DNA of 64,000 nucleotides. Origin: Oculina patagonica (Eukaryota). Each line of letters begins with the position of its first letter. Within the stretch, counting starts at the first letter, position 1. Positions 16,602-60,591 of the stretch are shown piece after piece. The position numbers and the translations under genes are program-made. Under the pieces are notes generated by a model. That model was given only the letters and a program-made list of their open reading frames with translations, did no database searches and was not told where the DNA came from. Location of the stretch: positions 33,852,001 to 33,916,000 of the forward strand of contig NC_135759.1 in assembly GCF_052425735.1 (NCBI RefSeq), written 5' to 3'.

Positions 16602-16790
16602 TACTTTTGTTTAAATTGCAAGTCCCTACATTTCAGAGAACAGTGTCGAGACAAGTGTCGAGGTGGTCGTCGAGGTGTCGAGAAGAGTTGACGGTCTTGC
16701 CTTTTTACCAGCGGAGGATCACAATAATAACTTCGTGTAAATCTAATGAAGTGTCTTTCAACCTAGGAGGGGAACGGTTGGACATAATAT

Positions 16791-21336: not shown

Positions 21337-21510
21337 TGTAACGTTCCTATAACCCCTGAAGCCATACTTGACAACTGTAACCAAAAATAATGATAAGCAT
21401 GAGTAAACATAAACTCACATTTTAATTTTGTAGTTAGTTGATGGCCACTTAACTGCTATCTGCCATGTTTGAAATTACAAGTGATATACTGTTAACCAAT
21501 CAAAAATGAG

Positions 21511-26005: not shown

Positions 26006-26041
<36 letters not shown>

Positions 26042-27106: not shown

Positions 27107-27140
<34 letters not shown>

Positions 27141-30100: not shown

Positions 30101-30788
30101 CGTTTGAGGTTCCATAAAGCATGTAAAGGCCCGCTGGAAGGTTAAAAGAAGAAATGACTCCACTTATAAATTCAATTAGAAGGGTACATTATTTTTTTCG
30201 AGAACTGAAACTTTTAGTGTCTTACCGCTTTCGCGTTACCACCAACTTGCATTGCTCTCAGCTGTAGCCATGTCCAATTTGTATCCAGTTGCGTCGATCT
30301 TTAACAAATGAATGAAACGTTGAAGGAAAGTAAGTATCATTTAATTTGTTGCGTGCGGTACCAAAAGAACAAATGATTCGAAACAAAATTCGACCGGGAA
30401 ATCGTCATGGACATCTACACCACTCGACCACAATTTTTTTGTGTTTTCATGTTAGAATTACTCTTTAAATAAGACAAATATTCCGACAGTACATATGGGA
30501 TATTGTTCTTTACCTAATGAAAGTTAAGTGAACACCAAGAGATCGGTGAACAGCCGAGCAATCAATACATAGAAAAACTCCATAAGTTACTGATGCCCAC
30601 GTTGGATTGTTATGTCCGCAATCAAAGCAAGTCTGAAAACAAAAGAGGACTTATAAAGTTAGACAGCAGTTGATTAAGAACAGAGGAAAATGGTTTTCAT
30701 CAAAAATCTTTACCTTATTATCAGGGAGGGATTTCAAGCGCTTGAAAATAATGGCGATGTCTTTCGGGTTCACCACCGCATCCGCCAT
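21511..30788 (-). CDS. ARFGAP2: ADP-ribosylation factor GTPase-activating protein 2/3 (Glo3 type); 3' end uncertain because of the N gap
   Basis: Exons 30788-30714, 30632-30514, 30298-30226, 29087-29029, 28814-28742, 28336-28189, 27784-27728, 26600-26545, 25861-25826, 25558-25185, 24957-24916, 24507-24460, 23944-23891, 23458-23412, 22939-22869, 22523-22421, 22223-22153. ArfGAP zinc finger CFDC...[33 protein letters not shown], and Glo3 repeats [11 protein letters not shown] / [11 protein letters not shown]. The last exon 21543-21511 is speculative. ARFGAP2 and ARFGAP3 cannot be distinguished (probable co-ortholog). Confidence 0.9.
25994..26054. repeat. (ATT)n microsatellite
   Basis: Direct reading. 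Confidence 0.9.
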
Positions 30789-31056
30789 TTTCTTCTTCCG
30801 AGAGAAGTTTGGAAACGTCATCACTAAACTGTGTCACGTGGTTAGTGTAAGTGTGCGTGAGAAACTGGACTCAAGTTATCTGCATGATAACGAGGCAATG
30901 GTACCCGCCAAAAGTGGCGGGAAAAAGGATTTTAAAAAAATTTGCAAAAATTTTATCCGAGGAGGAAACAAGACTGGTTAATTTTTTGTTGCCATTGCAA
31001 GTTTACTTTCAAGACCATGCTAGTTCTTCTTCGCCAAGAGCGGTGACATTGACGAG
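30789..31056. promoter_or_regulatory. Compact bidirectional promoter between ARFGAP2/3 and SYCP1
   Basis: Start codons diverge with 268 bp between them. E-box TCACGTG at 30834-30840; inverted pair CCCGCCAAAA / GGCGGGAAA at 30904-30924; YY1-like CCGCCATTTT over the ARFGAP ATG. Confidence 0.65.
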
Positions 31057-32840
31057 ATGCAATCCCATGCTCACAGTCAACTGAAGCACCACATTCAGCA
31101 GCCATTATTCAAGCTGACTACAAGCTCAGTTTCTCAATCTCCACAAACATCAGGCTCGTATTTTGCGAGTCCAAATGTCAACAAATCTGCCCATCATGGA
31201 CATCAGTTGAATATCAGACCTGTAAACTCACCCTCGAATGCCTACTTTCGTCCAAACACTCCAAGGCAGAAAGAAAAAGGTAGCTGATAAACTTTATTTT
31301 ATTTCTACATGCTGCTCAGAAGTTTTTTAGACCAGAGTAGACAGAAGAAATCCGGGCGTTTGTTTTGAAAATTTTCTCAAAAACTAAACGCCAATGAGGC
31401 TTGATTACACTGAACCATTGACATCCTTCGCAAGTTACTACAACAAATTATGAGGTCTAAGAAAGTAAACTTAACTACGGTAATTATACTTGCAGAAGCA
31501 GAGAAAGTGGAAAAAGACAGAGCGCAATCAACAGAACGAATACATTCCTTACATACTCGCCTTCATCAAGAAGCAGAGAAAATAAGAAAATGGAAAACGT
31601 CAACAGAGATAGAAATAAAAGAAAAGGTAAAATATTTAGAATTTTGTTTTTTTGTAATTTAAACACAAGTTATGTTTTGTTATGTTATCTTTTTTAACAG
31701 ATTTTTTATTTGCTCTTAACTGGCTTTCTTACGGCTAAATCCTTTCATGTGATTTCTTAACTTTTTTCTTTTCCCAATTTTACAGGAGAAAAAGCTACAA
31801 GAAGCTGTGCAAACAATAGATTCTCAGAGAAAGTCAATTCTTGATTTACAGGTATAAACAGCTTTGTTTTAAAAAATTGCAATTTTCTAGTGAAAGTGCA
31901 GAGATCACAGTATAAATCTTTATATAAAACATCAAGTGCAGAACTTATAAGCTTGAAGACTGGTATTGAGTATCACTTTATATGTCCTGTAGATATCTGT
32001 TGGCTGATAATACAAAGAGACATTCTATATCCTACGATCGGAAAACAGCAACTCACCAGTTTTGCCAAGAAGCCAAAGCGATTTTTATCACAAAAAGTCC
32101 AAGAAAATCAAATACGGAAAACAATACTGAATTAATTACCAGAGGTAACAATTCTTCTTAGTAGTGTATAAACTGGTCGTGTTTTTTATTCTCAGTTTCA
32201 GAATGAAAGTCTCAGCTCAAAACTTCAAGAAGAGCTTGCAAGTAGGGAGGAGGTTGAACACAAGTAAATTAATACATCTTGCAGTTTGCTCAGTTTGTCA
32301 AGTAAATTAATACATCTTGCAGTTTGCTCAGTTTGTCTAGTTATCTCCTTTACAACTATTTCACATTCAAAGCCAATGAAATAACATTTATATTGTTCAT
32401 CAATTTTTTTTTATTAATTTTCAATCGGGTCCACATTGCTAACAGTTAAATCACTGATATGTCTACCCTGTATAAATATTTCCAGTTATTATTGTACTTT
32501 CTAGAATCGTTGCTACCCGAGACATGTGCAACGCACTGAAAGATCATGTTGCAAAGGTGGAGGAAAATATACATAAAGGCAAGTTTTAAGCTGAAATCGT
32601 AGGCGGATTTAAGGGGGAGCTAGAGCCGACGGAGGTCGCAGCCCTTCTCAAGTGCTTCCAGAGGGCAGGGAATAGCATCTCACAGAACCAAGATTTTTAA
32701 GTTTTCCTGAGGGATACCCCCGGTCCCCTAAATTGTCGCAACCCCCTGTTCCTGAATTTCCTGGATCTGCCGTGCTAGTTAAAAACTGTATTGTTATCGT
32801 CGCCGTCGTCGTCATTGTTATCGTTATCATCATCATCATT

Positions 32841-32877
<37 letters not shown>

Positions 32878-35800
32878 GATTGTTATTATTACTTTAATTA
32901 GTTCCAACCATAATTGACTGTAAAGTGTTTCTACACTTTAATTGTAAAAAAGATTTACGCATTGGAACTTAGCTATAAAGCACATTTTAAGAAACTGCAC
33001 ACAAAAAATGTGCTACGGTTCTGTCACCGCTGCATTTTCATGAACGTTGGGCCTGGCCAGTACATAAGTGTATTAAAGTAAATGTGGAAGTAGGTCTCAG
33101 TGGTTGAATAAAGAGTTAACCTTGAAAACAACATACCTTTTTCTTTTTATACTTGCAGGGGAAGAAGATCGAGACGAACTCCGATTTCAAGAGAAAAGTC
33201 GTATTGAACAGTTTCAGGTGAGAATATTTATATCTTTTTTCATTTGAAGTCTTCCCACTAGTGGTAGCATGCTATAAAAGAGGTGTCATCTCTCTTGGCT
33301 CTCTGCTACGTTTCCAACAGATTGTAAAATACTTCACTGCAGGCGCGTAGGGGGGGGGGGGAGGGAGGGGGGGGGGGGGGCCCCCCCCCCCCCACTTGGA
33401 GAGTACATAAAATTAAACAAATTATAGCTGGATTTCTTTTCAACAGGAATTGGTAGTTAAATTTCAAGATCTTCAGATTGAACACACAGCAAAGTGCAGT
33501 GAAATGAAGAATAAACGTGAGTCATGTCTTTTTCTGTTTTCAAATGTACCAAAGACCTGGCTTCCATTTTATTTAATTTTTCACAGCTTAAAATACTTTT
33601 GTTTCAGTTGACGAACACAGACAGAAGCACGAGGAATTCATCGTGGAGTATACAGAGAAACTTGATAAAGCAGGGAGTCAGGTATTAAGATTATTTTTTG
33701 GTCGAGTCACTTCGTACTGTATAGTGCAATGACGCGATGTGATAATGCAAGAAAAAAAAATAATTAAAAACAGAGTCGTTTTCACATGACCTTTTACTTT
33801 GTTTCTTGGCACAAGAGGCCCGCCCTCTTATCTCATAATTTCTTGGAATTTGCACAGGTTCAACTTCTTGAGAATGACAGGAAAACAAAGGAGAACCAAA
33901 TTTCCACCATGGAAGCAGCTTTGGAGAAAAGCAAAGAAGAGTCTACTTCGTTAGAGCACGAGCTAGGTAATTTGACTACTTTTTTTATCTTGCACTGATT
34001 CAGTTTTAACTGGCAAAGACAACTATTCTGCGATATTCTGCGTTTAGTAAGCTGTGATTTGTGTTGAGAAAGTTTAAGCAACCAATGGTCCAGTCGAATT
34101 CATAATGACGCAAAGTTGAGTTCCTCTCTTTTATTTCACAGCCTTGTTACAAAATAAATTGAAGAAATTTGAAAGTATCATCACCTCGCAGCAGGTTCAA
34201 ATACAAAATACAGAGGAAATGTTGACTTTTAATAAGGTGAGAACAAAACTGAAGGATCCTCCTCGAAAACAAAAACAAAGCAAAGTACAATCGCATAGAG
34301 AAAGAAAAAAGTCTGAAACGTTTATTTAGTTCAGAGAACTAGCAAAGAAAATAAACCTTTTTTTCGTAACTTTTTCAGGAGGAGTGCAAGAGGATCGAAG
34401 AGGAGCGCAAAGTCATCCAATTGCAGGTTGAAGAGGCACAACAAGTGAACCAGACATTAAAAGATAATAATCTCGAGATGAAACAGGAGCAAAGAAAAGT
34501 TCTGGATGAGCTGGAGAAACAGCTTTCTTCTTTGATAAGTGAAAAAGAGAAACTGGAAGAGAGGCAAGTGAATAGCAGCGCGGTAAAACCAAACTCACGC
34601 GGAGAAACAAACCAAAGAAACTCAATACAGTCACTAGTTTATCCCGTAATTTATCCCGTTTCTTTTCTTTTTTTCCAAACTCCGTTATGACATATCGCAG
34701 GGTACAGTATCGTTTCACTTTCGTGACAAGCTGTTTCTTATGGTTTTATCCTATCTAATTCAGCCATGTATTTTTTTTCCTTTCTAAAGCCTGCTAAATC
34801 TTACCAAAGTGAACGAAACTACAACAGAAGAACTGAAAACTTTGCAGATTAAGTTTGGTAAGTTTACAAAGATTGCAAGCGAAAAGTCCGTTTATAATAC
34901 CGACAATCTGATCTTTTCTTTCATCCGGCCAGCAGTGAACCGCCTATAGTCTAATAATTTGAAATATTTTATTTTTTCATAGAGTCTCTGACAAGAGAGA
35001 AGGAAAAAGCAGACACTTTAAACGATCATATTCTGAAAGAAAAGGTAAGCACTCTCAAAGCTCTTCAATTCCAGATCACAGTTTTTAAGAAGGAAACGGC
35101 AAATATTTTATCCTCCTCGTTACTTTATCTTTATTTTGCACACGTGTTCTAGGATGAATTGATGAAAGCTTGTGCAGATCTACAGACCAACCTTTCCAAA
35201 GAGGAGGAGAGAGCATTATCTAAAGGAGAAATGTTGCGGCAATCAAAAGAAAAGCAGGCTCAATTACAGGTAATTAGTACGTTGCAAGTCTTGTGCTTGA
35301 ACCGATGACTGCCCGGGTAGCTCGTTTCGGTATAAATTCACGCTTTCTTTTTTTTATCGTTATTTCTTAAAACTAATGAATTGCTTGCTGTTTTAGGAAA
35401 CAAACTCTTCTTTAATGAATGAACTCGATCAGGTCAACAAAAAGAAAGATGAGTTAGAGGAAAAGATCCGACTTTTAACGCTTGCCTCCGAAGAAAAACA
35501 GGTGAAGGCAATTGTCAATTTTATTATACATCAACGCGAAGATCACTATTTGAAAGTCCAGAATTTCATAACTAAATTAACCATACTGACTTTTTCTTCA
35601 ACTCTTCAGAGAACTATAAGTGATCTTGAGGGGAAGATCTACAATGCAAATTACAATCAGAAATACCTGACAGAGAACGTACAAGATCTTCAAACAAAAC
35701 TTGAGGATGAAAGGTACCATAGTTGTATCACTATTTTATCACTATTTTGAACTGTATATACTGAGAAAATTTACAAAACGATGAGCTATGTAATTCAAAT

Positions 35801-42899: not shown

Positions 42900-45800
42900 T
42901 CACTCAATAGGCGAGAGCTTGAGTACTTGTGCAGCTGAATTTATGCCATATGCCACAATCGAAACTTGTTTTTTGATTTCCTCCCCGGTAACTAATCCCT
43001 TCCGTGCACGATAAATGGCATCCACCACTCCACCGTACCAGTTGTAGGAAATGGTCGGGCTGTGTGTCAAAACCACGTGCCTAAAAATGGAAAATGCTTT
43101 CATTAGTCTTCTAAGACGAACTGGCCAGGAAGTAGTTTAATTTGAGGTCGCAATGTGACCCTGAATGAAAATCAAAAATGAAACGAAAGATGAAGCTTCT
43201 CGACTGATTATCATAAGTACAACAAGCAAAGCAAATCAATAAGAAGACCACTCAATAGTCAAGGAAAAAATATTCAAGATCTTTTACCACTTAAAAATCA
43301 TTTCACAAGAGGTGAAGACTGAGCTTCCTTCTAATAACTTTGATCTGCACATTATTTGTATTACGTCTCACCTCTGTAATGGGTTGGCCTGTAGAATTGG
43401 CTGAAGGTTGATAAAAGCCCGCTCTACGTTAATTAATCGGGTGTTGATTCTGCGCACAACTGCATCACTGAAAAAAGAAAATCGAATATTTCAAGACCTT
43501 TCAATAGAGGAATTTTTCAATTACTGCTCGCTTGGAGATTAAATCACAGAGACATGCAGCAATGAGCCAATAAGGTCTCAAAGTGAAACATGCAATCGGC
43601 GTAAACAAAACTGTCTTCACTTGATTTTTTTGCTAACACGCTAGTATATGATATTGGCAAAAGCAGTCCAAACGGTTCGGTAAACACCTTAACTGCAATT
43701 CAGTGTCTAAACTGGAGCATACAAGGAAGTCAGTATTGTATTATTTTAGCTATAGACCAGACGTTCAGCAAACGGAACTGTTTCTTCATAAAAGCAAAAG
43801 AGGATGATATGTAATGATTCTCTCAGACTCGTGTAGTGTAAATTACAGTACAAAGTACTGTACAAAATATGCTTTCTTACTCTTCTTTGTCTGCTTTTTC
43901 CACGAAAGCATCGAACACTTTAGCAGTGTCTTGGAAGTTTTTTACGGCCTCTTCAAGGTAGTCTGCAGGATGGACAAATTAAAGCGTTAAGTAAACAGTT
44001 TTAAATAAAACACAACGCATTGTGGTGCTATCCCAAAAAACCATTTTGGTGCAGTTGCTATGTCAGTTTAATAAACAAAAATAATGGCATATAAATAGTT
44101 GCTTTAAAACTTATTCTACTTATATTATTCCTGGTGCTTATCAAAACTTTCCTCGAGTACCAGTTTAGAAATTAACTCTAGTAGGTCAATGATGTTTTCT
44201 CGTCTTTTTATTCCCCTGTTTTCCTAACTGATTCTCAGTTTCTGACACAGACTAGCACTCGTTTAAATGGAGAACTCGGGTTTGTGTATTTTAGGCGGAA
44301 ACTGGTCATAAACCTGGGCAGAAACGGCTAGACTGTTCATAGCCTTTCTATTTTATAGCGCAAAAGAACGTGAGAGAAATAGAGCGAACGAGCGCAAGCG
44401 CGAAGCTCGAGGAGACGAGTGATGTTAACTGCTGCAAACTCGCAAGCGCCATGGTGCACTCATGATCGGCTGTTGTCAACGTAATGACCTTTTTGTTGCC
44501 TTTCAACCAATGGTTATTTTTTGTTTTAATTAGAGAAACAGGGAATTCACACTTCTCTCTAAAGATGGTTACAATCCATCTATTATTTTAACTAATTATA
44601 ACTGCGTCCAGATCTCGATTCTTTTCCCGTTTTTTAACGATCGAAGAAAAAATACGAGAAAATGGAGAGCTGTGAACAGTCTAGAAACAGGCGAAAACTT
44701 AAACGAAGTGGAAAGACCTACATACCCAATTCTTTTTTCACAGCGTAAGTGTTAAAATCATCTTTGAACTTTTCCTTTATTTTTGTAGTGAACACCTTCA
44801 TGTTAGCGCCATAGTGGGTCACGTTTAATGGCAGAATAACGGCATCAGCCAAGGTCATGGTTATTTGGGTCCAAATTCTTGTGGTCACTTGATGGTATTT
44901 AAAATCAGGGTCAATAAGGTGCGACATCCACCAAAAATTGTCGTGAACTGTGTGGTATAACGGATTACCGGCGACTTTCTGTTGGAAAAACGAAATTTAT
45001 GATTAAAAATGGCCTGTGACCTCCAGATCGGAGTACGAATACGACTTTTCAAAGCTGTTGCTTTTATGCTTTCAGGGGCGGATAATGAGGCCAGGGGATG
45101 TCATCTTTTCTGTACGTTACCCTTATTTACAGTTCGTTTCCAGATCAGAATTTTACAACCTGAACTGCAAAAAAAACTTACATTGTTGTATGTGTAACGA
45201 ATATCCACAATAGGAATTCCAAGCCGCTGGATGAAATTGACATAATCACTACCTGCTCGTGGTTGCTGAAGTCTGCCGATAAAAGTAATAATAAACATAT
45301 AAGGTAAACTGACAAGAATGCGGACTGTAAAGCCCCCATAACTGCAAACAATTAAAACCAACTCTGCTAGTTGTATAGTACAGACGTTTATAAGCAATCC
45401 TTTATTTACCGCAATAATTTATGCTTTCTCCTTTAATTTCGCAGTTTAGCTTACATGTAAATACAATAAACAAGTATGCTTTTGATTAGTTACTACCTTG
45501 GTAAATAGTTGAACCCCATTGTGTTTGGAATTTTCCTGAGCCATTCATCAAAGGCAGTCTCGTCTCCTTGAGGGCTTTGTACCTAACAAAATAAAAGCAA
45601 TTATATGATTGTTTGATTGAGTGATGAACCGTTCTGTGTGTTTATATTGTATGCAATCCCATTGAAAGACCTTAGAATGTCGTTGAATAAATCTGAGAGA
45701 GGTAAATGGGCTTGTGTCCTACCAACCTTCATCGCTCCTCTGGCCAAAACCCAGTCAAGAAGAGGTGCAGACTTGGCTCGGAAAGAATAATTTCCTTTGG

Positions 45801-48800
45801 AAGTAACAAAAATAATATTATAAATGCAAGACGACTATTGTAACTAAACATTAGAGTGATTTTCAGTTGACTGTCGCAAAACCAAAGTGATGATTTTCCG
45901 TGTTTCAATAAAGTTTTACATTACGTTATTAAAAGTAATAACTCTGTTCAATCACAAAGGAAACAAACAATCCATAAAACCAATCAAAACTAGAAGCAGA
46001 TACATGTAGACGGCGCTTTCGCGGGAAAACGCGTGCCGGTGACTCACGATCAGTAATGGCGCGCGTTTTTTAAATCAATCACTAAGCGTTGTAATGTAAA
46101 ACCAAAGCAAGGCAAGTATGCTTTCCACACTCAAGTGAAAACCACTCTAAACTATTTGATACTGATTCTGAATCTAAAGAAACTCGAAAAAGAGTTAACA
46201 GTTCTTTTAATGAAATATGGTAGAAGCTCGATCTACTGATATAGTTTATGTTGTATCTTACCGTCAACAGCCATGTCTACGTTGAGATATGCCACAGCAC
46301 GGGCGGACAATAACCGCGAATATTCCTTCAAAGAATAAAACAGAACAGTTGCACTTAGTTTCCGTAATGGCCTTCTCGTAAAATGAAATAGTGTTTATTA
46401 AGTCCTTCTTTGCGATGTATAAACTACTTTCAAATCAAATATTAAAAAGCTAATAATAGTTTGCTAGTAAAGTAGGGAAAAACGACAGATGGATGCGTTT
46501 TTAACATGAACCCCTCGCTCGGGAGATTGGGCAACCACTCCCAACATCTACGACTTTAAATAAATACCATACCATGATAAACTAGAAAGGCACAAAGATA
46601 GTCACGATCGCGCAAGATTTAGACGGATTCCGAGGTGAAACTTGAAATATCTATAGGCTACGTTTTTCAAGCTGAATGTACATTTCTGTGTAAGGAAGTG
46701 AAACATTTTGAAACTGCAAGTTCAGTGCTATACTCATTTTTTTTATTAGACTAATGGATCCATTTACTGTACCTCCAACCATTCCACTGATCCCATGTAC
46801 TGGGGTTCCTCAGCTCCCCAGCTTAACAGCACTATGGTGCGTTTTGGCTTCCATCCTTAGGTTAAACAACATCGGTGTCAACTGTGGTTAATAGCGTTTT
46901 CCAAGCTGAAAATTGTAAGTCAGTACAAGTGGCCTACGAACAGCACCCAACATTTTGCCGGCTTGTTGACGTCCGAGTGACAAAACCTGGCTTGCGAGGA
47001 TTCTACATCTCTTGGATGTTTTTACTGAATGACACAAAACTTACGCTAGTAAAACCCATAGACAGAAACATTTATCGGACAATTTCTTAAATCTCTACCT
47101 CAGTTGGGTTTAAACTATTTGCTTGCTAGTTCGCGAGAAAGATATTGCTCATGTTAGCCTGCGTAGCAGGCGCCGTAGTTTCAGACGCCTGCTACGCAGG
47201 CTATGCTCATGTTGGTTATTAAAATTTACCTTTGTTCAGCTGCTCTCCAAGAACTCTGGACAATTCCATCATGGCAGCAGTGCCGCTAGACGCATCCGCC
47301 GCACCAAATACCCAAGCATCTCGATGATTACCAAGCAACACGAGCTCATCTGCAAAGGATACCAAGAAAGAGGATTTGCATATACGAGAGTACTAAATTA
47401 TTGCCTGCTGGTAGACTTCAAATTTCATTTCTGAATACAGTTTTCCAACGTAACGCAGAAAGCAAAAGGGACATCTGCACTGACCACTGAGCTACTGCAG
47501 TTCACTTGCCGCATTTGAACATCTTTCTTTTTTTTCCAACAACAGCAGTTTTTGGCTAAGGCTGCATCATCTACTTGTTATTTTAAAAATTTATTCCCGT
47601 CCCACAACATCTTTTTTTACACAAATTGCCCCAGTCTGACCTTAAAAGCGTAGTCGGTAGGACAACTGCGATTTAATCTAGAATTCGTGGCTCTCACTTA
47701 TATCAAAGATTTTTCCTGTTTCATCTGATTCCATTTCTTACTTGGTTTACAAAAAGAATAGAAGAAATATCGAGGGCTAACACTCATTCAATAACAATTT
47801 ACTAATGTATAATATCTTTATTATCACGAGTGTTCATAATTATCATTCTCCCGTACAGTTGGAAAGCTTACCAGGATGGGTGGATCCTTTGATTACTCCC
47901 ATCACGTTGTACACATCGGCCTCGAACAGTTCATTAGTAACGTTCAAAAGGACCTCTCTGGGTGGAAAATACAACAGTACAAAAGACATCATGATTTTAG
48001 AAACGTAGAACTGAATCAATAAAAGTTTTATATCGGGGAATAATAACAACGTCTTTCACGTTTTAGTGTGTGGTACCATCGCTGGATATTTATAAAAGTT
48101 TAGTTGGAGATTAGTCGACGTTAAAACTGGAGGACCGAAAAAATGTACAGAAAACTTGACTAAAAGATAAAAATACTGAAATAAAAAATCATGCAAATCC
48201 TGGATAAGTTTAAACGTACTTTGAACAACCCGGCTCCGCAATTAAATTTCAGATTTAGATTCAGATGTAAAATGAACCTCCTCTTAGCGAAAGATCAACG
48301 TTTACATCAAAACTGAATTCACCTTTCTATTCATAGAAATTATCAAAAGTGAAAATGCAAAAAGGCCGATTTCTCAAAACAATTACCGAAGTAGACTCTC
48401 TATGGTAGCTGTGCTATATGTCGTTAGAATTGCGTATCACTTCACCAGTACTCGTGTAGACAAGCTCTGCGAACACTTCTTCGAAAGTTGTCATGCTAAT
48501 TTACCGCAAATGAAGGAAAACGGCATCTATAACTAGGACCGTACTTCCGTTTTTCTTGACAAAAACCACGGTAATGAGTTCTAAACAGAAATAAAACGAT
48601 GACCAAGCAACATCCTATCAATATACATGGTCGCATTACTATCGTGCAAGACTAAGTGCAAACTGAGCTAATTTGGGACAGTGCTAGTGCCCAGTGTCGA
48701 CTCATCTCTGGTTACTCACCTGGCATCATTTTCTGCCATCTGTATTCCATATGGGAAGTTCAGACCTCCTTGGAAGGACGAATTTGCCAGAACCACATTA

Positions 48801-51800
48801 CGAACCAAAGTTCTAAATTACATACAAAGCTGAATCACTGATTCATTAAATAATTAATAGAAAAACACAGGGATTATCTCAACCCCTTCCCCCGCTTGAA
48901 GTGATAAAGTATAAAGCTCTCAGTCAGTTTGGCCAATATTATTAACTTAAGCAGTATAAGCAATTTTAGTACTTTTACACTTAACTTCTCAAGAAACGTA
49001 AATAAAAACTCTACTTAGGCTGTATAACAAGGAATATATTGCTTAAGTTCGTGTAGCAATCGCCCTTCGAAACGGGGGTCTGAAGAGAGCATAGCCTGCT
49101 GTTCGGATTTCGCGCCCCGAGTGCGGAGCCTTCTCCGCCGAAACAAAGCAATCACGTGCAAAATATCGCCAGCTACACAATAACAAGCTATAGAGAGCGT
49201 GAATACGTGGAGTGGGAGTTGGGAGAGGTGCTTTGCGCTTCCCGCAAGCTTCCCCTTTCAAATATGAGAGAAGATGGGGAGACTTTGAACAAAATATCCA
49301 GATCGAATAACCCAGGGAACCCTTTTCTAAACACACACCCATACTGATACTGCTATGAATCTCCTCAAACTCAGATAAAATTCATGGCAAAAATAATAAT
49401 TGAAGGTTTAGTTTATGTTCGTGACTATGTTCCACTGTTCCTTTGTCAAGTACCTGCCAATCTCAGGCGCGTAGCTGGGGTTTTTGGAAGGGTGTTCGTA
49501 TTGACCAGAAATATTTATAAGGGGGTTACTAAATACGAGCGCCGAAGGCGCGAGCCTCCAGGGGGTCTGGTAGCATGTCCCCCCAGAAGATTTTGAAATC
49601 TAGAGGCCCGGAAATGCTATTTTCAGCATTGTGCACGTCAATATTTCAAACTCGATGGAGTGTAAAATAACAGGTCGTCTATTGATATTCCATTTATCAA
49701 ATCCCGAACGCTTGTTAAGAAAATATTTTTCAACGACGGGATTATTTTGACTAGGTCACTAGGATATTTGAGGCCACTTACTTACTCATTCACTACAGGA
49801 CTATTCGTAAAGCAAACTTGACAATTGCATCATCCTCCGGTGGAGGCCTTGAAATAGATTGACAATTTCGTCCAGATCGACAGGTGTATCATACTTAATA
49901 TGCTTGAGAAAGATGGGAGAGCCCATTCTCTTAACAATGTAATACTTTCCCGATACTTTTACCGGTTTCGTGCAGGTTAATTTAAAAGCTGCAACATTCA
50001 AAGTTTGTTTTTCATTCCCCCACTATTTGCCAAAAGCTGAAAATCAACAATTGTGTTTTCATTCCTCCATTATTGACCTCCAAAGGGGGTTCGTTCGAAC
50101 CCCTCGAACCCCCCCTCCTACGCGCCTGTAATCTTTAAGGAGTGTTTGTTTACCTGAGTAGTGGCTCAGCGTCCTTGTATGATATGGGATGTACAGGGAT
50201 CTGAGGGAGAAGCTTCTTAGCTTCCTCTTTAGGCAAGCGGTACATTCCCTCTAAATTAAAAACAGACAAGATTCTTGTTTCAACAAACACTATTTAGGAA
50301 AGAAATTTCTTCCTAGAGAAACACATTTGTTTTTAAAACAGCTTTCTGAAGTAGATCAGCCTTGGAATATCAGCTACCATTTATGTCTTACAAAACAATA
50401 TCACTCTTGGAAGAAAATACAAGATCATTATTGAGAGCACATGGCATTTTACGTGCACTTTTTCGAATAACCTTTTCTATTGCACAGTCGTGCCGTAAAT
50501 GCCCCGCAGCACTTAACTTAGAGCGACAGGGCAGTGGCACAGATTGGCTAATTGGCCTCAACTTTATTATCAACTCATCTGAGTAGTTTTCCTACCAACT
50601 GAAGGGTAGCCAGGAGTCTGTGGGTCTCCTCGTATTGGAGATGACTTTATGTTGCCACGCTGCACTCCAGTGCTAGGCATCCAGTTATAGTCTGGATACA
50701 CCTTATTAACTCCTTGCTTTGCATAATCCTCAGGATCCATATAATAGATTGCTCCAATAGCTCCTGCTTTGTGGGCTCGTTTGTTCTATGAGAAAATCAG
50801 GCCAAGGAAATAAAATTATAAGGAACAAAGCGAGAAGGGAATGGAACGGTATTGCGGAGCTCCTACTCTGCACTAACAAAAGTGATCGAGATCCAGATGG
50901 AGGTCCTTGTCATACGGACTGCTACAGGAACATTAGAGGTGCGGGATAGAGCGGTTTTTACTTGAGTGTCGAAAGTAATTCGAATTTGCTTTCGTTTTCC
51001 ATTACAACGATTAATGGTTGGTTTAAAACCTGGTCCGCCACTTTCACACTGCTTTCACATCCAATCAGAAGTAAAGCCAAAACCACACGTGACTCACGCG
51101 TACGTTTTCCCGCTCTTCGCACAGGCTACGTGTATTTTCTTCGAGTTTTGATTGGTTCACTGGATTTTCTGTGTCCCTTAATTATGATCGGCCAGAGTTA
51201 TTACTTTGGTTTGGGTCTTACAACACTGAATTGAAAACTGCTCTATTACATTGTAATAACCAATATATAGCGTTTCTTGCTTGCATAAGAAAAGGCATTG
51301 CTTACAGTCTACACCGTTCTGTTTTGCCCATCTTGGCCTCTACCTTTACACTAACCTTAGTAGATCGTCCAACCTTTCCGTATCGCATGATGACGATTTT
51401 ACCAGTGCAGTTAACTTTAAGTCTTTTGAGTTCATCAAAGTCTTGTTCTCGTCCATAATTAGCGTACACAAGTTTACCCTGCAACGTTTAAAGCAAAGAG
51501 GAAGTAATAAATAGAGATAAATACTTTGCTTTTCAATTTTTGTGAGGCAAGTGATTAAGAAAAAAGGGGGCAAATAAAATAATAATAATAAAAAAAATAA
51601 ATATGTGTTTATAGTGGTCATGCACTTAGCTTCATATCTCAACGAGATAGCTAGTTTACAGGCATGCCACTGAAACAGAGGAAACAAATAATTTATAAAT
51701 GAACATAACAGGATTAAAAATCCCAACTGGCAGGAGGCAGACCAGTTGGCTATATACAAAGCGTGGTCGAGGATTTGAACTCGGGACAACCGAGAAACAA

Positions 51801-54800
51801 ATCCAGCTAGTGGCAAGGGCAGGCCTCGAACCGGTGACCTCCGGATTACAACACCAGCGCCCTAAACCACTCGGCCACGCTTGCCTCCGGCAAATGGACT
51901 ACAGACAACTCTCTCTTAACGGACACCTTTATAAGACGGACACCTCCATAAGACGGACACCTGGTTATGGTCTCTGCCGTTTTTCAGTCATTTTGCTGTA
52001 AGAAAACTCTCTGTAAGACGGACACCTCTCTAAGACGGACAACGGACATTTTTTCTAACCGCCAACGGACAGGCACTAAAAGTTATTTTTTCGTGAATAA
52101 TACTTCAAAACTTGTTATCGACATATAGCATAGCAGGTCAGCGCCTTTAGAATACCAAATTTACCAAAAACAATCCGCTAAAACGCATTACTTCTCTGCT
52201 TAAACTTGTAGATTTAGTTTTCTACTTACAGTATCACCGTTTGTTATTAACAAACAAGTCGAATCTCTGATATTATTTTTGTTCCACTTTATAGGTTTTG
52301 CTAACGTACGCGACTAAAACAGACGTGTATTCGTTGTGCATAGCCGTTTAGCTTTATCGTCTCAAAGTTTCTGGTGTCACGTTACCTCGACTCTCTATAA
52401 GGCGGACACCTCTATAAGACGGACAGTTGGGGACGGTCCCGACGGTGTCCGTCTTAGAGAGAGTTGACTGTATAGTGGAAGTAGTCAATACTCAGATTGC
52501 AAGTACTTCGATACTGTTTTAAAACATATGCAGAACGAGCCAGATATGACCAGTTTTAATTAAAACTCAGAAATTTAACTGTCCGGGAGTCGATGAAAAA
52601 TAGTTCGAGAAGTGCTACGTTTCAAAAAAGGCAACAACTTGCAAAAAGGAAGAAAACCTAGTGAAAGTTGTAAGACTGACAATTCTGAGTACACGGACGT
52701 GTAAGTGTAAGAGTTTCTGGAAACTTGAATGCAAGAAAAATTAAGAGAGCTTGTATGGGAATAAACTCTACTCCGCAGAGGCCTCGTTTAATATAACCCA
52801 CTCTCTTTGTTTGTAATTTTCAACAAGCTTGATCTTCCTGATACAAAAGTTGTTGATCGATATAAATATACACTCACTCGCACGGATCCAGATGGTGCAT
52901 ATGCGTTAAACGGCGGAACTACAAGGCTGTTGTTCTCAGAAGGAATTAGAAATGCCTCCTGAGGTGCTGATCGGTTAATCTCTTCAGATCCATTGTACAA
53001 AACTACAACACCAGGCTTCTTTGGCCGAGACAGCATGATTATGTATTTCTTCATCGTCACGTCGATACCATAGTCCTTCCATTTTTCTTGCATGTGCTTT
53101 GCCAACTCGTAGCTTTCATTAGAACCAGGAAAGTGGGGCTTTTTGGTGAAAAACCTGCAACAACGGTAAGCTGTTAGATTTTGTTCGTGTTTTGTAAAAC
53201 AGGAGAGGGCCAATCAAATCTCGCGCGCGCAACGAATTTAGTTTTAATATAACCCTGCCGCAAGAGGGGGGAAGGGGAAACACAGCTATTGTAGTGACGG
53301 GGAAGTCCGAAGTTTTAATGTTTTTAATCTTTGAACCTTTAGGGGTTAAAAATCTTGTGTTGTCTTTTTGGCGTGTTTTAGTAAGGACCTTTTCGGGGGT
53401 TGACCAAGCAGAGTTCCGGGTTGTCTGAAATATCCTATCTTCAGAAACTAGCGATGGAAAACGTTGAGTCAAATCAGAGACACTTTTGGGAACTTCTTAC
53501 AAATTTATTGTATCTCCTCGTAAACAAAATACGACCTACAGAAATAGCCCTTATGCATGTTTACGTCAGACTGGCTAGTTTCGCCACCAAGCCTCGTTTC
53601 TGAAGTGCAAACTTGTAAATTCTATCATGAACGAATTCCCAAAGCAGTGGAGATGAAAAGATACCACGTGAAAACTGCATGAAGGTTAAGAATAATTCGC
53701 GCAAACGAGGCTTGGTGGTGAATTTTGAGCATATGGCGTTATCGCGCTTAAGTCGCTTAAGGCTCTGAAAAAAAGATGAACAATTTAAATAATTAATGTA
53801 CACTCGAATCGTGCTGCCTTGGCGCCTTTCCTTTGAAACGATCAAAGCCGCCCACACTTTGGAGTTTGACAGCAAAGAACAAAGAACTGACGTCAGTGAC
53901 ATGCAAGCCAATTTTCCTTTTGCTTAATCTCGTAAGTCGTATGCACTGTGATATTCGCTGTTGCGTGACTAACCTCACGCGAACCATCAAACTGTAGAAA
54001 ACTACTGATTACGGAGTTAAACGACAGCCGGAAATACGTCTGCGTTCGCAGGCCACCAATTTACTAGACATGTATTTTAAACACGTTTGACAACGCTTAC
54101 ATATAAAAGCAATTTATTTGTCGACGTTAAAAGTCTTCTTCACGCTATGTAAAGAGCAGTTCCAAAGTTGTCAACCAAGGGTCAACTTAGAATGCAAATG
54201 AGATTTGATTTTTTTCCCAAATGGACCAAATGGTCGCATCGTCATTCCCCTGTGGCAGTGAAACTGTTGTGTACTCTTGTAACCATCCGCGCAGTGACTT
54301 CTTCCATTCACGAGATTTTTTAATTATTGTTATTCGCCTTGTACCTTAGATAGCGCACGCTTGACCGGAGTAAAAATCCCTTTTCTGAAGAAAAAAAATC
54401 GATAAACTTCAACTTATCTCGTCATTAAACGTGCGCTTGCGAGTGTCACCCTAGTAACCTCAGAACAACTACACATGTTAACATTTTGCACTGTGCTCAC
54501 TATGCATCCGTTTCGATTTCGCTTCGTACAAGTTGAATCGATAGTTTTACAGGTTTTATTACTGTGCGAGCTTGTGCGTGAATGTCCGGCTCAAGTTAGC
54601 AAGGTCAAAAGTTTCTCATCTTTCGAGTAATGATTTGTGGGCTTTCAGTTCTCACCTCCACTCGGCCTTCAGAAAATCAATTTAAACTTTTCGCTGTGAA
54701 ACTTCCTTTCTTATAATATTGCTTCGGCTTTCCTTTATTTTATATGCGCAAACGAGTTTACCATTACCAGTGCGTTTCCGGGGTTTCAACGCCCACAGGA

Positions 54801-55275
54801 AACATTGTCGCTCTCGCAAATACACACCCTTTCAGTGCTAGTTTCTGTCGGCTGTCAATGCTCTTGAACAAGATTGTCGCTACATTTTTAGCTATTTTGG
54901 AGCAATGTCGCCTGTCGCCAAAACCCCTTGGAAGGCGCAGGCTATGACCCTCAGTGACTAATTCTTAAGTCACTTAGCAGCGAAACGCGCAAAGGGTTCT
55001 ACTTACTCCAAGTTTTCTCTCAGCTCCTCCGTGGAGACCATCTCAACTGCATTTTTGTATATCTTATCAAGCTGTTCCTGGCTTTGTTTTCCCTTTGGAG
55101 TTGTACTTTTGCCATTATCATCACAGTTCTTTGCAGAATTCCGTCCGATAAAATAACCAGCAACAATACCGATCCCGGCGAATGCAAGGAGACCAAGCAC
55201 GATCAACACGATAATGCAGCAACGGCGCTTAGGAGAGGTATAACCCCCTGATCCTTTCTCTTCTACCGTCAACAT
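42900..55275 (-). CDS. M28B peptidase, glutamate carboxypeptidase II / NAALADase-like type II membrane protein (~752 aa with proximal first exon)
   Basis: Exons 55275-55007, 53154-52878, 51478-51356, 50785-50596, 50250-50154, 48812-48720, 47957-47872, 47349-47230, 46855-46773, 46325-46262, 45794-45727, 45582-45497, 45272-45182, 44978-44726, 43962-43881, 43467-43372, 43080-42900, all in phase. Signal anchor; PA domain ([29 protein letters not shown]); Zn/catalytic motifs [29 protein letters not shown]; TfR-like dimerisation domain. FOLH1/NAALAD2/NAALADL1 family, exact orthology unresolved. Confidence 0.92.
49464..50128 (-). mobile_element. Internally deleted hAT element retaining a transposase C-terminal remnant
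   Basis: TIR CAGGCGCGTAG / CTACGCGCCTG. The minus-strand [27 protein letters not shown] resembles the end of the hAT dimerisation region. Flanks CAATCT / TAATCT. Confidence 0.65.
51640..51889 (-). mobile_element. tRNA-derived SINE (second family)
   Basis: Minus-strand head GGAGGCAAGCGTGGCCGAGTGGTTTAGGGCGCTGG...GGTTCGAGGCC with A/B boxes; a degraded relative lies at ~22560-22740. Confidence 0.7.
51902..52470. mobile_element. Tc1/mariner-pogo type MITE
   Basis: TA|CAGACAACTCTCTCTTAACGGACACC ... GGTGTCCGTCTTAGAGAGAGTTGACTG|TA; repeated TAAGACGGACACC. Confidence 0.8.
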
Positions 55276-55693
55276 GTTGAAAGGATTCTTTGAGGAGATT
55301 GAATTTTGCCGTTTCGGCTTGATCTATTTATTAATCGATCTGGGTTTTTTACACAATGATGTTTGTTGCTGCTAACCAATCATTGTAACAACAAACAATT
55401 GTAAAATCTTAGGTGCGGTCAGGTTTCAGACAGCAACGTGAAAGTGTCACTTGTCATTTGCTGTCAAAACACGAGCTGTCTACATTCTTCATTGCGTGAC
55501 CAGCCATCGTGACGTCTATGTTGAGAAATTAACTCGGATTCAGTCACGCTATCGCCAGATCCCCATATCCGCTATGGTGGTGGTTAGATTTACCTTTTTC
55601 GAATTTTTAAAAACTTATAACTGTCGACTTACTCTTTCAGCCATGCTAGTCACACTTACGTACAAGCGGTTCGAGTGGGAAATACGCTTGACT

Positions 55694-55976
55694 GGGGAGC
55701 AGGGATGGCGCAGTGGTGAGAGCGCTCGCTTCCCACCAATGTGGTCCGGGTTTGATTCCGGCCAGGTACCATATGTGGGTTGAGTTTGTTGTTGGTTCTC
55801 GTCCTTGCTCCGAGGGTTTTTCTCCGGGTTCTCCGGTTTTCCTCCCTCCACAAAAACCAACACTTTTAAATTCCAATTCGATCGGGAATCCGAGGGCCAC
55901 AGGTTTGTCAGTCGAAGACTGTTACGTGCAACCCTCGTAAAACAAAGTTGATTTTATTTTATTATTTTTTTTTTTA
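55694..55976 (+). mobile_element. tRNA-derived V-SINE-like copy with a different 3' tail
   Basis: Same head and core as 21073-21336; diverges after CCAATTCGATC. Confidence 0.8.
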
Positions 55977-56316
55977 AGGACGCACAGAAACCATGTGTAA
56001 AAACCCTGTACTTATAAGTAAAGGCTACCGGCTAGCATTAATTACGGATACTGATCTGCGTCAGAGTCAGTTACTGAGACTAAGAGCATCAACCAGTGTA
56101 ACCATTCCAAGAGAAATGAGCCCGCAGTCAAACCCCGACTGGACAGTGTCTCAGCCCAAGCCATCTACAGGGCTGCGAACGGGACCGTGTTTTAATTCGG
56201 TCAGTTGAATTGGTTGAGCTTTATCGTGCTCTATTAGGAAAATCTGTTTTCGGTTGTTAGGATTGTAGAACTCGGTCGATCAATAGGAAATAGTTGTGAA
56301 ATGTTGTATTGGGAAA

Positions 56317-57219
56317 CATAGGCGTACGAGGCGGGGGGGCGAGGGGGGCTGCAGCCCCCCCAGCGCCGAAATTTTTCGGGCAAAATGCTCAGAATTCGGG
56401 CAATAAGCCAGAGAAAAAAGTGAAAATAAGCCGACAAATCTCAAAGTTATGTTCAAAACGAATTACATCAGCAGAAAAGTATTGAAAATATACCAAACTT
56501 TGTGGTTCAGAAGTCTAAATTTCTCATACCGCATACCATATCTTGTCTGCTTTCGTTTCCTCTCGCAAATTGCTATAATGATGTTCGATTTTTCTCGAAA
56601 ATTCTGCCTGACCCCTCAGTTTTATTCAGTTGTAATCATTTTTAAGTGAGTGGGAAATTGACGAGGGCGACCAGAAGTTAGGATTTTCCATAGCTTGAGA
56701 GTTTGCGCATGGTGGATCCAGTGTAAGACTTTGAAACAAAGCTGTTACAGATGTGATGAAGCTAATGCTCTGATAATGCTTTTGACCCAAACGTTTAGTT
56801 AGTTCTAATGGCTAGCTTAAAACTTTCAACGAAATGTTTTAACCCATTTACGCCTGAATGTTTCAACCACTTTTCTATAACTTTCAAGTAGGCGAAAACA
56901 ATGTAAATTGGCTCCCCAAAAATACTTTAATTTTTTTCTGAACTAAAGTGAAAAAATAAAATATTTCCGAAGAAAAAGGATTCAGTGCATTGGGGGAGGG
57001 AAGATGAGAGACGCTGGGAACGAGGTTGTGCATTGACATCTACGGACAACGCCACGAAATTAATTAGAGAACTTTAAGAAGGCAGGGTGCACAACTATTT
57101 CAATGCACGTTTTGTTGTCCATTCTATATGCCTCTCTAATTCGCTTTCAACGCATGTCATTTTTTTTCGGGCAATAAGGTGTCCGCCCCCCCAGGTCCGA
57201 AGGTGCCCGTACGCCTATG
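56317..57219. mobile_element. Non-autonomous hAT-like element
   Basis: TIR CATAGGCGTACG / CGTACGCCTATG; perfect 8-bp TSD TTGGGAAA. Confidence 0.85.
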
Positions 57220-57650
57220 TTGGGAAACTTAAACCAAATTGACCGTTTTAATTAAAGTTGATCAACCAAACCAACCAATTTTTTTTTTCAATAGAACACG
57301 AAAAAACCCCAACTAACTTAAAACGGTTGATCTCAATAGCCGAACAAGGCCTAGGTGTATAAATGGATACGTAAACCAGCACTTGATGGTGGGAATGTTT
57401 GGCTTAATGCGAATAGCGAAAACCGGCAGACTGAAAGGAGCACTCAAGCCTGGATTTTAGCTGTCTAGATCTCCTAGTCTCCGGCTCCGGTCTGATTACA
57501 AGAAATGGAGCTGATTTTCCTGTACAGTACAGTATAAATGCACCTTTAGCTTACAAAATCAGATTGTAAGGTAAGGTGAAGTCTTCGTTTGAGCCTTGTG
57601 TCCTATGAGACTGGAGCTTATCAGATTGTAGACAATTTTAAATGACTTAC

Positions 57651-57934
57651 TTCAGAAAGTCTCTGAGTTGTTTCGTGGAGACCATCTCGACAGCATCCTT
57701 GTGGATTTTTGCTAAATCTAAGTGGCTGCTTTGAGAAGGTGTTGGCTGAACCCTGGCGTCGCAATCAGTACTTGCAGTCTTTCTTCCAATGAAGTACCCG
57801 ATGACAATTCCAAGAACTAAGAACAGGACAAGACAAAGTATGGCTGCTACTAGCAAACGACGTCTGCCCTGGCGATGCTTTGGAGAAAACCTTTCGGTCA
57901 GCATGGTCTGCTTTTCAGGCTCTTCCATCATCAT
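57651..57934 (-). CDS. Distal alternative first coding exon of the GCPII/NAALADase-like gene (cytoplasmic tail + TM + stalk)
   Basis: MMMEEPEKQTML...LLVAAILCLVLFLVLGIVIGYFIGRK...IHKDAVEMVSTKQLRDFL is paralogous to exon 55275-55007. It ends in a phase-2 GTAAGT donor compatible with the acceptor at 53154. Confidence 0.85.
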
Positions 57935-60591
57935 TTTACCAGAACTGGACTTCTATCACGCAGGGAAAATTAAGACGATCAGCAACAGCATGTCAATAAA
58001 AGTTACTACTTAAAAAATATTTGTGTTATTGCAGAGAAATTGTTCGAGCTACACTACTATTCAGTTCAGACGGACTTTGCAATAACGTACAGACTGCCTG
58101 TTACTTACGTCGATCAACTCGTTACCAAACTGCTGCAAAAATCATTACCAAGTTCTTGAAGACAAAAGCTCAATTCAACTGCAAGGTGCAAAAAGTTGCT
58201 GTCTTTATAAACAAACAATCTTTGAGAAGTTAATTATTTCAGTTAAGTACACAGAATGACAGGGCCACTTATTTGCATCAAAGAATTGTCCGTGTCGGTT
58301 GGTGCCTTATTGTTTTTATGCTTCAGTGACACATGCAAATATATAAACTAAGATGAACAAAACATTGTCACTCACCATGTGTCTTCTGTGCACGGAATGA
58401 TTTCGTGAATTATCACTGTCCGGTGTATGCCTGAAATAACTCACTTTTCGCTATAAACAAAGATCTCGGTGTTGTATCATTTCTTAGCCTACGCACGCCA
58501 GAAGCAACTGCACGAGAGAACGTGAAAACATGTCTGACAAATTGCAATGGACAGAACAAAGATCGGAGAGGTTGAGTTTGGCTAAGGGTGTTTATTTCCG
58601 GCAGTCTAGCTCAACACTTGGATGTTTTGTAGGAAATAGCTTGCTTTAGTGCTTTTGAAACAACAGGATTTCAAAGCATTTATTACCATTGTTTGCAAAG
58701 AATAGAATATACCTTAATGAAACAAGGCAAAAAACCACGGGGAACAAAACTGAAACGGGAAATGTCGAACTTGTCTAGAGTTCTACTGGAGCTGGTTTTA
58801 ATTAATGAACTGGAATAAAAAACAAATTAAATATATTGATCAGGAGCTCCCTCCTGATATTGGCCATGTAAGACATGTAAGGTTTAATGGCTGCATGCGT
58901 CATGTGAGTTGAGTGAGTATAAATTTCAATCATTTTAGGAACCATGAACCAATCAACCTGACAGTCAATTATTTAACACTACACAATGTTTGATTTACTG
59001 TCAGAATCAGTGAAAGGAAAAACAAACACACAAAAAAATGTAAGAAGTAAACCAAGGGAGGTGGCTTGGCTGGGAGCGTGAGAAAAACCGCATGATATTT
59101 GTAAGATGATGATGTCAACTAAACCTGATCAACAAAAACACCTATTGCTTTTCAATCAAACATGTTGGCCAATCGCACTTAAAATTTTTCGGAGCGTGAA
59201 GGCATTGTACTGTATTGTCTAAGATCCCTGTCGCGAGTCACGCTAACCTGAGATCATGTCTTCCCTCCCTACTCATCAACATTAAACAAACAAAAAAACC
59301 CCAGATAGATTGCAAGGCTGGTACAATGGCAGGAGGGCAAGATTTTTTGGCCAATATTTCAACTAGCAGAGCTAGTCTTCTTCAGGGCCAGTACTGTAAT
59401 CTAAGGAAAATAGCGGCTCTAAAATATGAATTACCCGATCGCAGGTAAGTAAGGTTATTATGATGTGCAACTTGGGTGAATGCCTAGGTAGTTTGACTCG
59501 TGAAAATTTACTCTATATATTTTTCTTTTTTTTTGGGGGGGGGGGGGGGGGGGGGGGGGGGACCTGCTTATTCAGGGCTCTTTCCCCAGACCCCGAAACG
59601 GCTTGTACTGGACAACTTGGAGCACTTTTCTTTTGTTTACTTTTCTTTTCTTTACCTTTAGAGCTATCCTTCTTTTCTCGTTTTTGACTCTCTAAATATC
59701 ACTTTTCGCACCGTTGCCATGCTCCTCGATGAAATACGCGGCTATTCCGGTGGGAAATGACATGGAACGGCCCTTTTTACCAGAAAGTTTTCAAATGGTC
59801 ACACTTATCCCGTACCAGTATGTTTGTTGAAATAATTGTACTGTTCCATTTGCCGGAAAATCTTCATCGGTTTTCCTGGAAAGCACCCTAGACAAAATCG
59901 ACTGTAATGTACCAACCTAATCCTTGATCCCTCATTGTATTGTCCCTGAGTCAATATGCCAATAATGACTCCGGCTACCTATCCTTCACCTGCGATCAGC
60001 CCGACGTTACTAATCGAACAGTTCGGTAATCGAACTTGATCGAACTGAATCGAACTTAATCGAACGATTCGGTTCGATTAGTTCGATAATCGAACAGAAT
60101 CGAACCCAAAACTTTGTGTGAGAGAGTTCGATTCCGTTCGATTTCCGAACTAATCGAACCAAATCGAACTTAATCGAACACAAAAGACAAATCTTAAATT
60201 CACCCTCATACAACCAGATAATTGAACAGTCTGTCTAAGTAACAGTAATAAATGAATAAATTTTTTATTTATGGACTTTCGGCAAAAAAACCCGAAACGC
60301 AAACTTCAACAGACAATAGAAAATAAATCCTCCTTCACTCTAGTTCTATTTCATGTTATCAACCTATGGAGTCCCAAGTAGTCTGCGTAGCTGGCGATTT
60401 CGTCGGAAAGCACGCGTGGGAGATTACTGCGAAGACTCGCCTTCTTTCACTTTGCCGATTGTTTCTAGCGACCTTGCCGCTCACTCGCTCCCCAACAAAA
60501 CCGTCAGCTGCGCACACTATAACCCAAGCAAAATATTATAAACTGAAACAATGCTAAAAAACTGTTTTCAAGTTATTTGACATAAGTTAAC

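Follow-up and report, generated by a model that had tools for sequence, protein, structure and literature searches.

We found that a single peptidase gene of the coral Oculina patagonica carries two alternative coding exons, which supply different membrane anchors and cytosolic tails to one shared enzyme body. The gene lies in a stretch of 64,000 nucleotides (NCBI RefSeq assembly GCF_052425735.1, contig NC_135759.1, positions 33,852,001 to 33,916,000 of the forward strand; hereafter the window, in whose numbering positions are given), on the minus strand from about 58330 to 42900. It encodes a glutamate carboxypeptidase II (GCPII)/NAALADase-like M28 membrane peptidase, a relative of human PSMA. 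Two paralogous exons, each with its own ATG and here termed distal and proximal, both join one exon 2 at 53154-52878. We are highly confident that the two resulting isoforms are real, conserved and selected. We also consider it probable, with some reserve, that the arrangement as a whole is best explained by a duplicated exon giving two isoforms that differ in dileucine-type trafficking. The coding parts of the gene are as follows.

57651..57952, minus strand: distal alternative coding exon, with its ATG at 57934, an acceptor AG before 57952, and 94 codons followed by 2 nt; matches RefSeq isoform X1 (P0034) exactly.
55007..55275, minus strand: coding part of the proximal alternative exon, with an ATG at 55275 and 89 codons followed by 2 nt; matches RefSeq isoform X2 (P0149) exactly.
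52878..53154, minus strand: shared exon 2, the start of the ectodomain.
42900..51478, minus strand: shared coding exons 3-17, with the PA, M28 and TFR_dimer domains.

The distal exon contributes 284 nt of coding sequence and the proximal exon 269 nt. Both end in phase 2, with the donors AA/GTAAGT after 57651 and GA/GTAAGT after 55007 respectively, and exon 2 starts at 53154 behind the acceptor ttgcag. The distal and proximal peptides are 44% identical by BLASTP (E 3e-19) and 46% identical in a MAFFT alignment, and have GYFIGR, AVEMVST and LR in common. Each exon encodes a short tail with a basic end, then a helix of strong hydrophobicity and about 45 residues of stalk. The distal tail comprises 26 cytosolic residues and includes EKQTML, and the proximal tail begins MLTVEEKG and includes GYTSPKRR and CC; both retain SPK[RH]R, a polybasic stretch and a Cys in the stalk. 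The best 19-residue hydropathy windows span residues 27-45 of the distal and 20-38 of the proximal product, directly preceded by GRRR and KRR, so that both have the short N-terminal tail, single signal-anchor helix and cytosolic basic residues of a type II membrane protein. When the full protein was used as a tblastn query, no second catalytic body was found in the window; the sole match beyond the single body was the paralogous exon 1, and nothing else was matched between the two ATG exons. A first-pass annotation, made from the letters of the window, had described two paralogous ATG exons with phase-2 GTAAGT donors, a single exon 2 and these shared motifs, and all of its statements about the sequence held.

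Several lines of evidence indicated that both isoforms are made. In RefSeq, O. patagonica has glutamate carboxypeptidase 2-like isoforms X1 (757 aa) and X2 (752 aa); both could be mapped exactly onto the window, with 17 coding exons and canonical splice sites apiece, and only their first coding exon differs. Logan contigs from four runs, each of a different study, were also aligned to 52870-58850 at 90% likeness. The joint of 55007 to 53154 was present in three runs (X1, X6 and X5) and that of 57651 to 53154 in two (X6 and X5), and both skipped exactly the predicted introns, with GT..AG ends on the gene strand. Both joints were thus present in X6 and X5, in keeping with 5' coding exons that are used in alternation and share one downstream exon. 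Complete open reading frames (ORFs) were found on single contigs (2.5-3.2 kb) of other corals, with either a proximal-type start (P0037, P0159) or a distal-type start (P0038, P0158). Two points tell against relying on the joints by themselves. The runs were only guessed to be RNA, and as contigs they carry neither expression levels nor transcript ends. In addition, the short side of each joint has only 27-28 letters plus 2 ambiguous ones, a length expected from a k=31 graph where two paths merge into a shared exon, but below the 31 letters required of a bridging record. The exact isoform maps, the complete ORFs in other corals and the absence of a retrocopy remove the doubt over these short joints. 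The first-pass annotation had named the two junctions as its RNA check; both 57651 to 53154 and 55007 to 53154 were seen in the RNA-like contigs, and the outcome of only one junction did not occur.

The region upstream of each ATG exon contained the following features.

58109..58328, minus strand: noncoding leader exon of the distal transcript, with an open 5' end (at least 58328) and the donor AC/GTAAGT after 58109.
55324..55380, minus strand: candidate core promoter of the proximal exon, with ATTGG (an inverted CCAAT) at 55380-55376 and TAAATAG at 55330-55324, both conserved in Orbicella.

Two transcript contigs (run X6 record 22 and run X5 record 15) join 58109/58111 to 57952. Together, the acceptor at 57952 and the leader upstream of it make the distal ATG exon the second exon of its transcript. 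It had been called a first exon, which was wrong, since the noncoding leader, from 58109 to at least 58328, precedes it. In the spliced leader there are in-frame stops upstream, and 57934 is the first in-frame ATG. The leader DNA is 69% identical between Oculina and Orbicella over 58279-58104, while the introns are unalignable. For the proximal exon, no upstream joint or acceptor was found among the run contigs of 52870-58850, and its ATG is preceded by an in-frame stop. TAAATAG and ATTGG lie about 50 nt and about 105 nt upstream of this ATG and are kept in Orbicella amid otherwise diverged DNA. The two forms are therefore likely to use separate promoters, as judged from these sequence features. 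A scan for bacterial-type promoters and terminators gave no matches, although this type of scan is unsuited to a eukaryote.

The leader also contains a short upstream ORF at 58121-58145 (MIFAAVW and then a stop, with its ATG near 58145), which might damp translation of the distal isoform. The GenBank model KAL9984887.1 (P0150, 894 aa) fuses an ORF of an upstream transposon (61275-60907), via a mini-exon encoding QQFGNELID (58109-58133), to the distal exon. Since the RNA contigs read straight through the acceptor of this mini-exon, the fusion is probably a prediction artefact; alternatively, it may represent a transposon-derived upstream start.

The two-exon layout is shared with other corals. 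In Orbicella faveolata, isoforms X1 and X2 are annotated and their N-termini are of the same two kinds; its locus runs from the distal exon over 1.45 kb to the proximal exon and over a further 1.36 kb to exon 2. Between Oculina and Orbicella, the DNA of this region aligns only at the leader, at both copies of exon 1 (for the proximal copy, including some 60 nt ahead of the ATG) and at exon 2. Between these two species, the ratio of nonsynonymous to synonymous substitution rates (dN/dS, Nei-Gojobori) reaches 0.47 in the distal exon (p 0.014 in a one-sided Fisher test), with 0.11 in the proximal exon and 0.10 in exon 2; both alternative exons are under purifying selection. In a third coral (ERZ25071802), two long contigs carry a distal-type exon, a long terminal repeat (LTR) retrotransposon, a proximal-type exon and exons 2-4 on one strand; the body of this gene matches that of Montipora at 81% and that of Oculina at 74%. 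The exon order is kept in this coral although the retrotransposon extends the spacing to 8.2 kb, which indicates that the spacing is unconstrained. A fourth coral is represented by a 3.1-kb transcript contig (P0038), in which a distal-type exon is joined to a body 85.5% identical to that of Montipora and 80% identical to that of Oculina. Montipora and Oculina belong to the two sides of the deepest split among stony corals. Since the layout occurs on both sides, the exon duplication probably predates this split, to judge from the sequences compared.

Homologs for these comparisons came from a whole-library profile search and an exon-length search. With residues 1-95 of P0034 as query, only the self match was returned, which reflects a word-index limit and not absence. 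In a tree of exon 1 peptides, six distal-type sequences formed one clade (support 91/85) that was present in all 200 bootstrap trees, while proximal-type sequences sat on short branches near an unresolved backbone. More distant homologs begin MLS[VL], as the proximal type does, and ML[ST]VEE is kept across distant sequences. Together, the tree and the starts of the distant homologs make the distal type look like the derived copy. The distal-type and proximal-type contigs of the TARA data (L012/L013 and L021, respectively) could not be joined by overlap. In the genome of O. patagonica itself, the other paralogs (a cluster at 21.5 Mb on C2, and those on C7 and C13) have one exon-1-like match per exon 2, and the doubled exon 1 is specific to this gene within the genome. 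Weak exon-1-like matches on C14 were dismissed as chance, because no exon 2 lies nearby.

We next consider the cytosolic tails, which contain the following element.

57899..57916, minus strand: acidic dileucine-like motif E7-K-Q-T-M-L12 of the distal tail, about 14 residues before the transmembrane helix.

Across 25 distal-type sequences, 19 of them exon ORFs added by an exon-alone search, the pattern [DE]xxx[LMI][LI] was present at the same aligned column in 21 tails, with the consensus EKESML. An acidic residue at -4 together with a hydrophobic pair is thus conserved among orthologs at this frequency (21/25). Over the same 25 sequences, the stretch ESML..RFSPKHRQGR is more conserved than the transmembrane helix. 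The motif is absent from the proximal tail, which has no acidic residue upstream of ML because ML is itself the N-terminus. Proximal residues M1-L2-T3 align with distal M11-L12-T13, so that the distal tail resembles an ancestral-looking tail with an acidic extension of about ten residues. The proximal tail has features of its own: Y-x-S-P-[KR]-R-R is widely kept, and the juxtamembrane CC occurs only in the closer relatives of Oculina, with KRRCC in Oculina, Orbicella, P0033 and P0037, and is missing in Montipora and P0001. The proximal GYTSP was considered as a YXXphi signal and rejected, because the last position of such a signal requires a bulky hydrophobic residue, which Pro is not.

These observations suggest the following mechanism. 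In a single-copy gene for a type II GCPII/NAALADase (M28B) metallopeptidase, the first coding exon would have been duplicated in tandem at a time that precedes the deep split of stony corals. Use of the two copies would be mutually exclusive, most likely from separate promoters, with the distal copy expressed via the leader exon and the proximal copy from a start close upstream of the ATG. The outcome would be two isoforms with an identical ectodomain and with different cytosolic tails, transmembrane helices and stalks. The distal copy may have gained its acidic N-terminal extension of about 10 residues, turning an ancestral N-terminal Met-Leu into an internal E-x-x-[ST]-M-L that resembles EQLPML of the invariant chain. 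Such a motif would be expected to bind clathrin adaptors and to direct the distal isoform to endocytic or endolysosomal membranes, with the proximal isoform lacking the signal. This last step, a dileucine-dependent difference in trafficking between the isoforms, is a tentative and somewhat doubtful proposal when taken by itself, plausible and with support from the comparison of sequences.

Several observations weigh against this reading. EKQTML does not fit the strict consensus [DE]XXXL[LI], because Met occupies the position of the first Leu, and fits only the EQLPML-type variant. The four tails that depart from the motif are two Orbicella-type sequences, which have MP, P0199, which has MQ, and P0203, which has a one-residue insertion; Orbicella, with MP in place of ML, is among the closer relatives sampled. 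The choice of exon replaces not only the tail, but also the transmembrane helix and about 45 residues of the stalk. Evolution of the distal exon is about four times as fast as that of the proximal one. Finally, in one coral contig (L016, ERZ25071792) a distal-type exon is followed five kb later by exon 2 with no proximal-type exon detectable between them, so that either the layout is not universal or the proximal copy has diverged beyond detection. The first-pass annotation had read the duplicated exons as giving different cytoplasmic tails, with the sorting motif in the distal one only. The part of this reading that stood is the motif, which is found in the distal tail and absent proximally; the view that the exons differ in the tail needs to be widened to the helix and stalk, and the loss of ML in Orbicella limits it further.

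The strongest alternative to this mechanism is that the two promoters serve to express one enzyme in different tissues, at different stages or under different conditions, and that the protein differences are tolerated drift. Alternative promoters commonly act in this way as a form of regulatory subfunctionalisation. The weaker constraint on the distal exon (dN/dS 0.47), the loss of the Leu of ML in Orbicella, and the retention by both tails of SPK[RH]R, the polybasic stretch and the stalk Cys would all fit. However, the distal cytosolic tail is the best-conserved part of the distal exon across the 25 sequences, above the transmembrane helix, and the conservation of proximal ML[ST]VEE across distant sequences also speaks against drift. 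Nor would drift be expected to keep the acidic residue at -4 together with [ST]-M-L. We therefore regard a purely regulatory role as unlikely, but as a serious contender.

A second alternative places the functional difference in the transmembrane helix or stalk instead of in a dileucine signal, for example through palmitoylation of the proximal Cys-Cys, partitioning into lipid domains, dimer disulfides or susceptibility to shedding. This would make use of the fact that the alternative exons also encode the helix and the stalk, and it is consistent with the conservation of KRRCC in Oculina and the three relatives named above. The absence of CC from Montipora and P0001 does not fit, however, and among distal-type exons the helix shows the lowest conservation of any segment. 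We consider this explanation rather improbable.

It is more improbable still, and by a wide step, that a partial duplication left the distal exon as a decaying relic whose transcripts are noise. The faster evolution of the distal exon is what a relic would show, but the ORF, ATG, phase-2 donor and tail of the distal type are intact in 25 sequence clusters, and the loss of the ORF in most relatives that decay predicts was not seen. Its dN/dS is below 1, its leader exon is conserved, and spliced full-length transcripts occur in another species (P0038). The depth of the distal junction contigs was also similar to that of the proximal form, although this is a weak measure.

The remaining alternative, that two tandem genes were collapsed into one body by the assembly, is close to negligible: nothing was found in its support beyond the fact that the junction contigs reach only about 30 letters into exon 2 and cannot by themselves separate two identical bodies, whereas an independent haplotig agrees in the order and differs in its indels, Orbicella and the third coral have the same order, the copies of exon 1 are only 46% identical although a collapse needs identical bodies, and there is no other copy in the genome. 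The haplotig is an unplaced contig of 9.7 kb (C1607), which aligns to 50130-59995 at 98.3-99.9% identity and carries both copies of exon 1 and exon 2 in the same order as the window. Compared with the window, it is missing 903 bp between the ATG exons and is longer by 773 bp in the next intron. With the order the same and the indels different, the two haplotypes agree on the layout. Apart from this 99%-identical haplotig, no retrocopy or further copy of the two exons was found in the genome. The possibility of a collapsed tandem duplication, raised beforehand as a check, was thus excluded by the same layout in the haplotig, Orbicella and the third coral.

We favour the reading of a duplicated first coding exon with a possible difference in trafficking, and turn to the enzyme itself. 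Exon 2 aligns with residues 36-127 of the crystallised human GCPII construct (2xef_A numbering; E 4e-11), and the match to GCPII in PDB extends over residues 24-751 (E 1.3e-140). Exon-wise Pfam matches were to PA, Peptidase_M28 and TFR_dimer, and P0034 carries PF02225, PF04389 and PF04253, the architecture expected of GCPII/NAALADase (MEROPS M28B). In comparison with chain 9hlw_A, the binuclear zinc ligands (H377, D387, E425, D453 and H553) and the catalytic E424 are all identical; these and the following residue numbers are those of human GCPII. The set of residues for S1' glutamate recognition and the arginine patch is incomplete: R210, N257, Y700, R463 and R536 are kept, and K699 is replaced by Ser and R534 by Asp. 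These two replacements mean that the substrate may not be a C-terminal glutamate. The coral enzyme thus belongs to the family, but judging from its pocket residues its specificity for glutamate is doubtful, and hydrolysis of N-acetylaspartylglutamate (NAAG) or of folyl-gamma-glutamate should not be assumed. The pocket residues aligned with K699 (encoded in 43080-42900) and R534 (45272-45182) differ from human GCPII in the anemone orthologs as well.

The GCPII-like family is expanded in O. patagonica. Distant paralogs lie in tandem arrays at C2:21519043-21565811, with five exon-2-like matches, and at C7:9393211-9432411, with three. In another cnidarian, represented by TARA Pacific metagenome scaffolds (L022 352-14955, L023 and L024), the gene is tandemly duplicated. 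Its proximal-type exon 1 lies about 1.1 kb after the last exon of the upstream copy, and the downstream copy is compact (about 1.1 kb from exon 4 to the last exon) and may be truncated.

Several mobile elements were found at the locus, among them the following element between the ATG exons.

56315..57221, no strand assigned: element of 907 bp with perfect 14-nt terminal inverted repeats (AACATAGGCGTACG).

The other haplotype lacks this element, which therefore has no part in the function of the gene. The evidence points to a recently mobile insertion resembling a miniature inverted-repeat transposable element, and relatives of the element are abundant in the run contigs. The extra sequence of about 773 bp in the haplotig intron between the proximal exon and exon 2 (window 53513-53520 versus L011 3402-4176) is a second structural polymorphism. 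A very abundant repeat resembling a short interspersed element occupies 55690-55900, also between the ATG exons, has a tRNA-like look on the plus strand and reaches a summed contig depth of 13,000-33,000 in all four runs; ARAGORN found no tRNA in it. In the third coral, the LTR retrotransposon between the alternative exons (RVT_1, RNase H and integrase) is present in both ERZ25071802 contigs, at L017 3253-6393 and L018 2417-6405.

Both isoforms are already present in RefSeq for two corals, and the mechanism is of a known kind, so that the novelty of this case is modest and no new class of mechanism is opened. New here are the leader exon, the motif statistics and the evidence that the arrangement is conserved and under selection; in the literature, we found no description of this two-exon arrangement. 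Its value is that of a deeply conserved case: through the duplication of its first coding exon, a single enzyme body can be fitted with either of two membrane anchors and tails. A testable prediction follows, namely that ML->AA or E7A in the distal tail should alter the location of the enzyme, and the isoform pair is a candidate for comparison of usage between tissues and between symbiotic and aposymbiotic colonies. A link to symbiosis is speculation. In its fullest form, a promoter-coupled switch kept since before the deepest split of stony corals would decide whether a GCPII-like ectopeptidase carries an acidic dileucine tail that binds adaptors or a tail lacking this signal. If the distal promoter were gastrodermal or active in symbiont-hosting cells, the enzyme would be placed on phagolysosomal or symbiosome membranes, where it could release amino acids at the interface between host and alga or host and prey. 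We regard this as a long shot. The main text of a preprint on the Aiptasia symbiosome proteome makes no mention of the GCPII-like enzyme family or of sorting motifs.

The closest known relatives of the coral enzyme are human PSMA/glutamate carboxypeptidase II (FOLH1), NAALAD2 and NAALADL1, which have the same type II topology, PA, M28 and TFR_dimer domains, zinc ligands and catalytic Glu. They differ from it in two respects: human GCPII has K699 and R534 where the coral enzyme has Ser and Asp, and PSMA has one first exon encoding a transmembrane segment, whereas the coral gene has two. The internalisation motif of PSMA, the N-terminal MWNLL, is not an acidic dileucine. Internalisation of PSMA through an MXXXL motif in its N-terminal tail (PMC3686812) nevertheless provides a precedent within the family. 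The gene structure has a counterpart in B4GALNT2, a human type II enzyme for which two alternative first exons give different cytoplasmic tails, the long tail adding a post-Golgi vesicle location (PMC9959560). However, the B4GALNT2 isoforms have their transmembrane and luminal domains in common and their first exons are not paralogs, whereas the coral exons are duplicates, each with its own helix and stalk. For the motif, the nearest likeness is the invariant chain (CD74), also a type II protein, in which EQLPML of the N-terminal tail acts as an internalisation signal that combines Met-Leu with an acidic residue at -4, and in which Pro at -1 is reported to strengthen adaptor binding (PMC2882754). 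The coral EKESML, known from sequence, has the same Met-Leu and acidic -4 residue, but has Ser/Thr at -1 where the invariant chain has Pro. Together, EQLPML and the MXXXL motif of PSMA make differential adaptor binding by the two coral tails a reasonable hypothesis.

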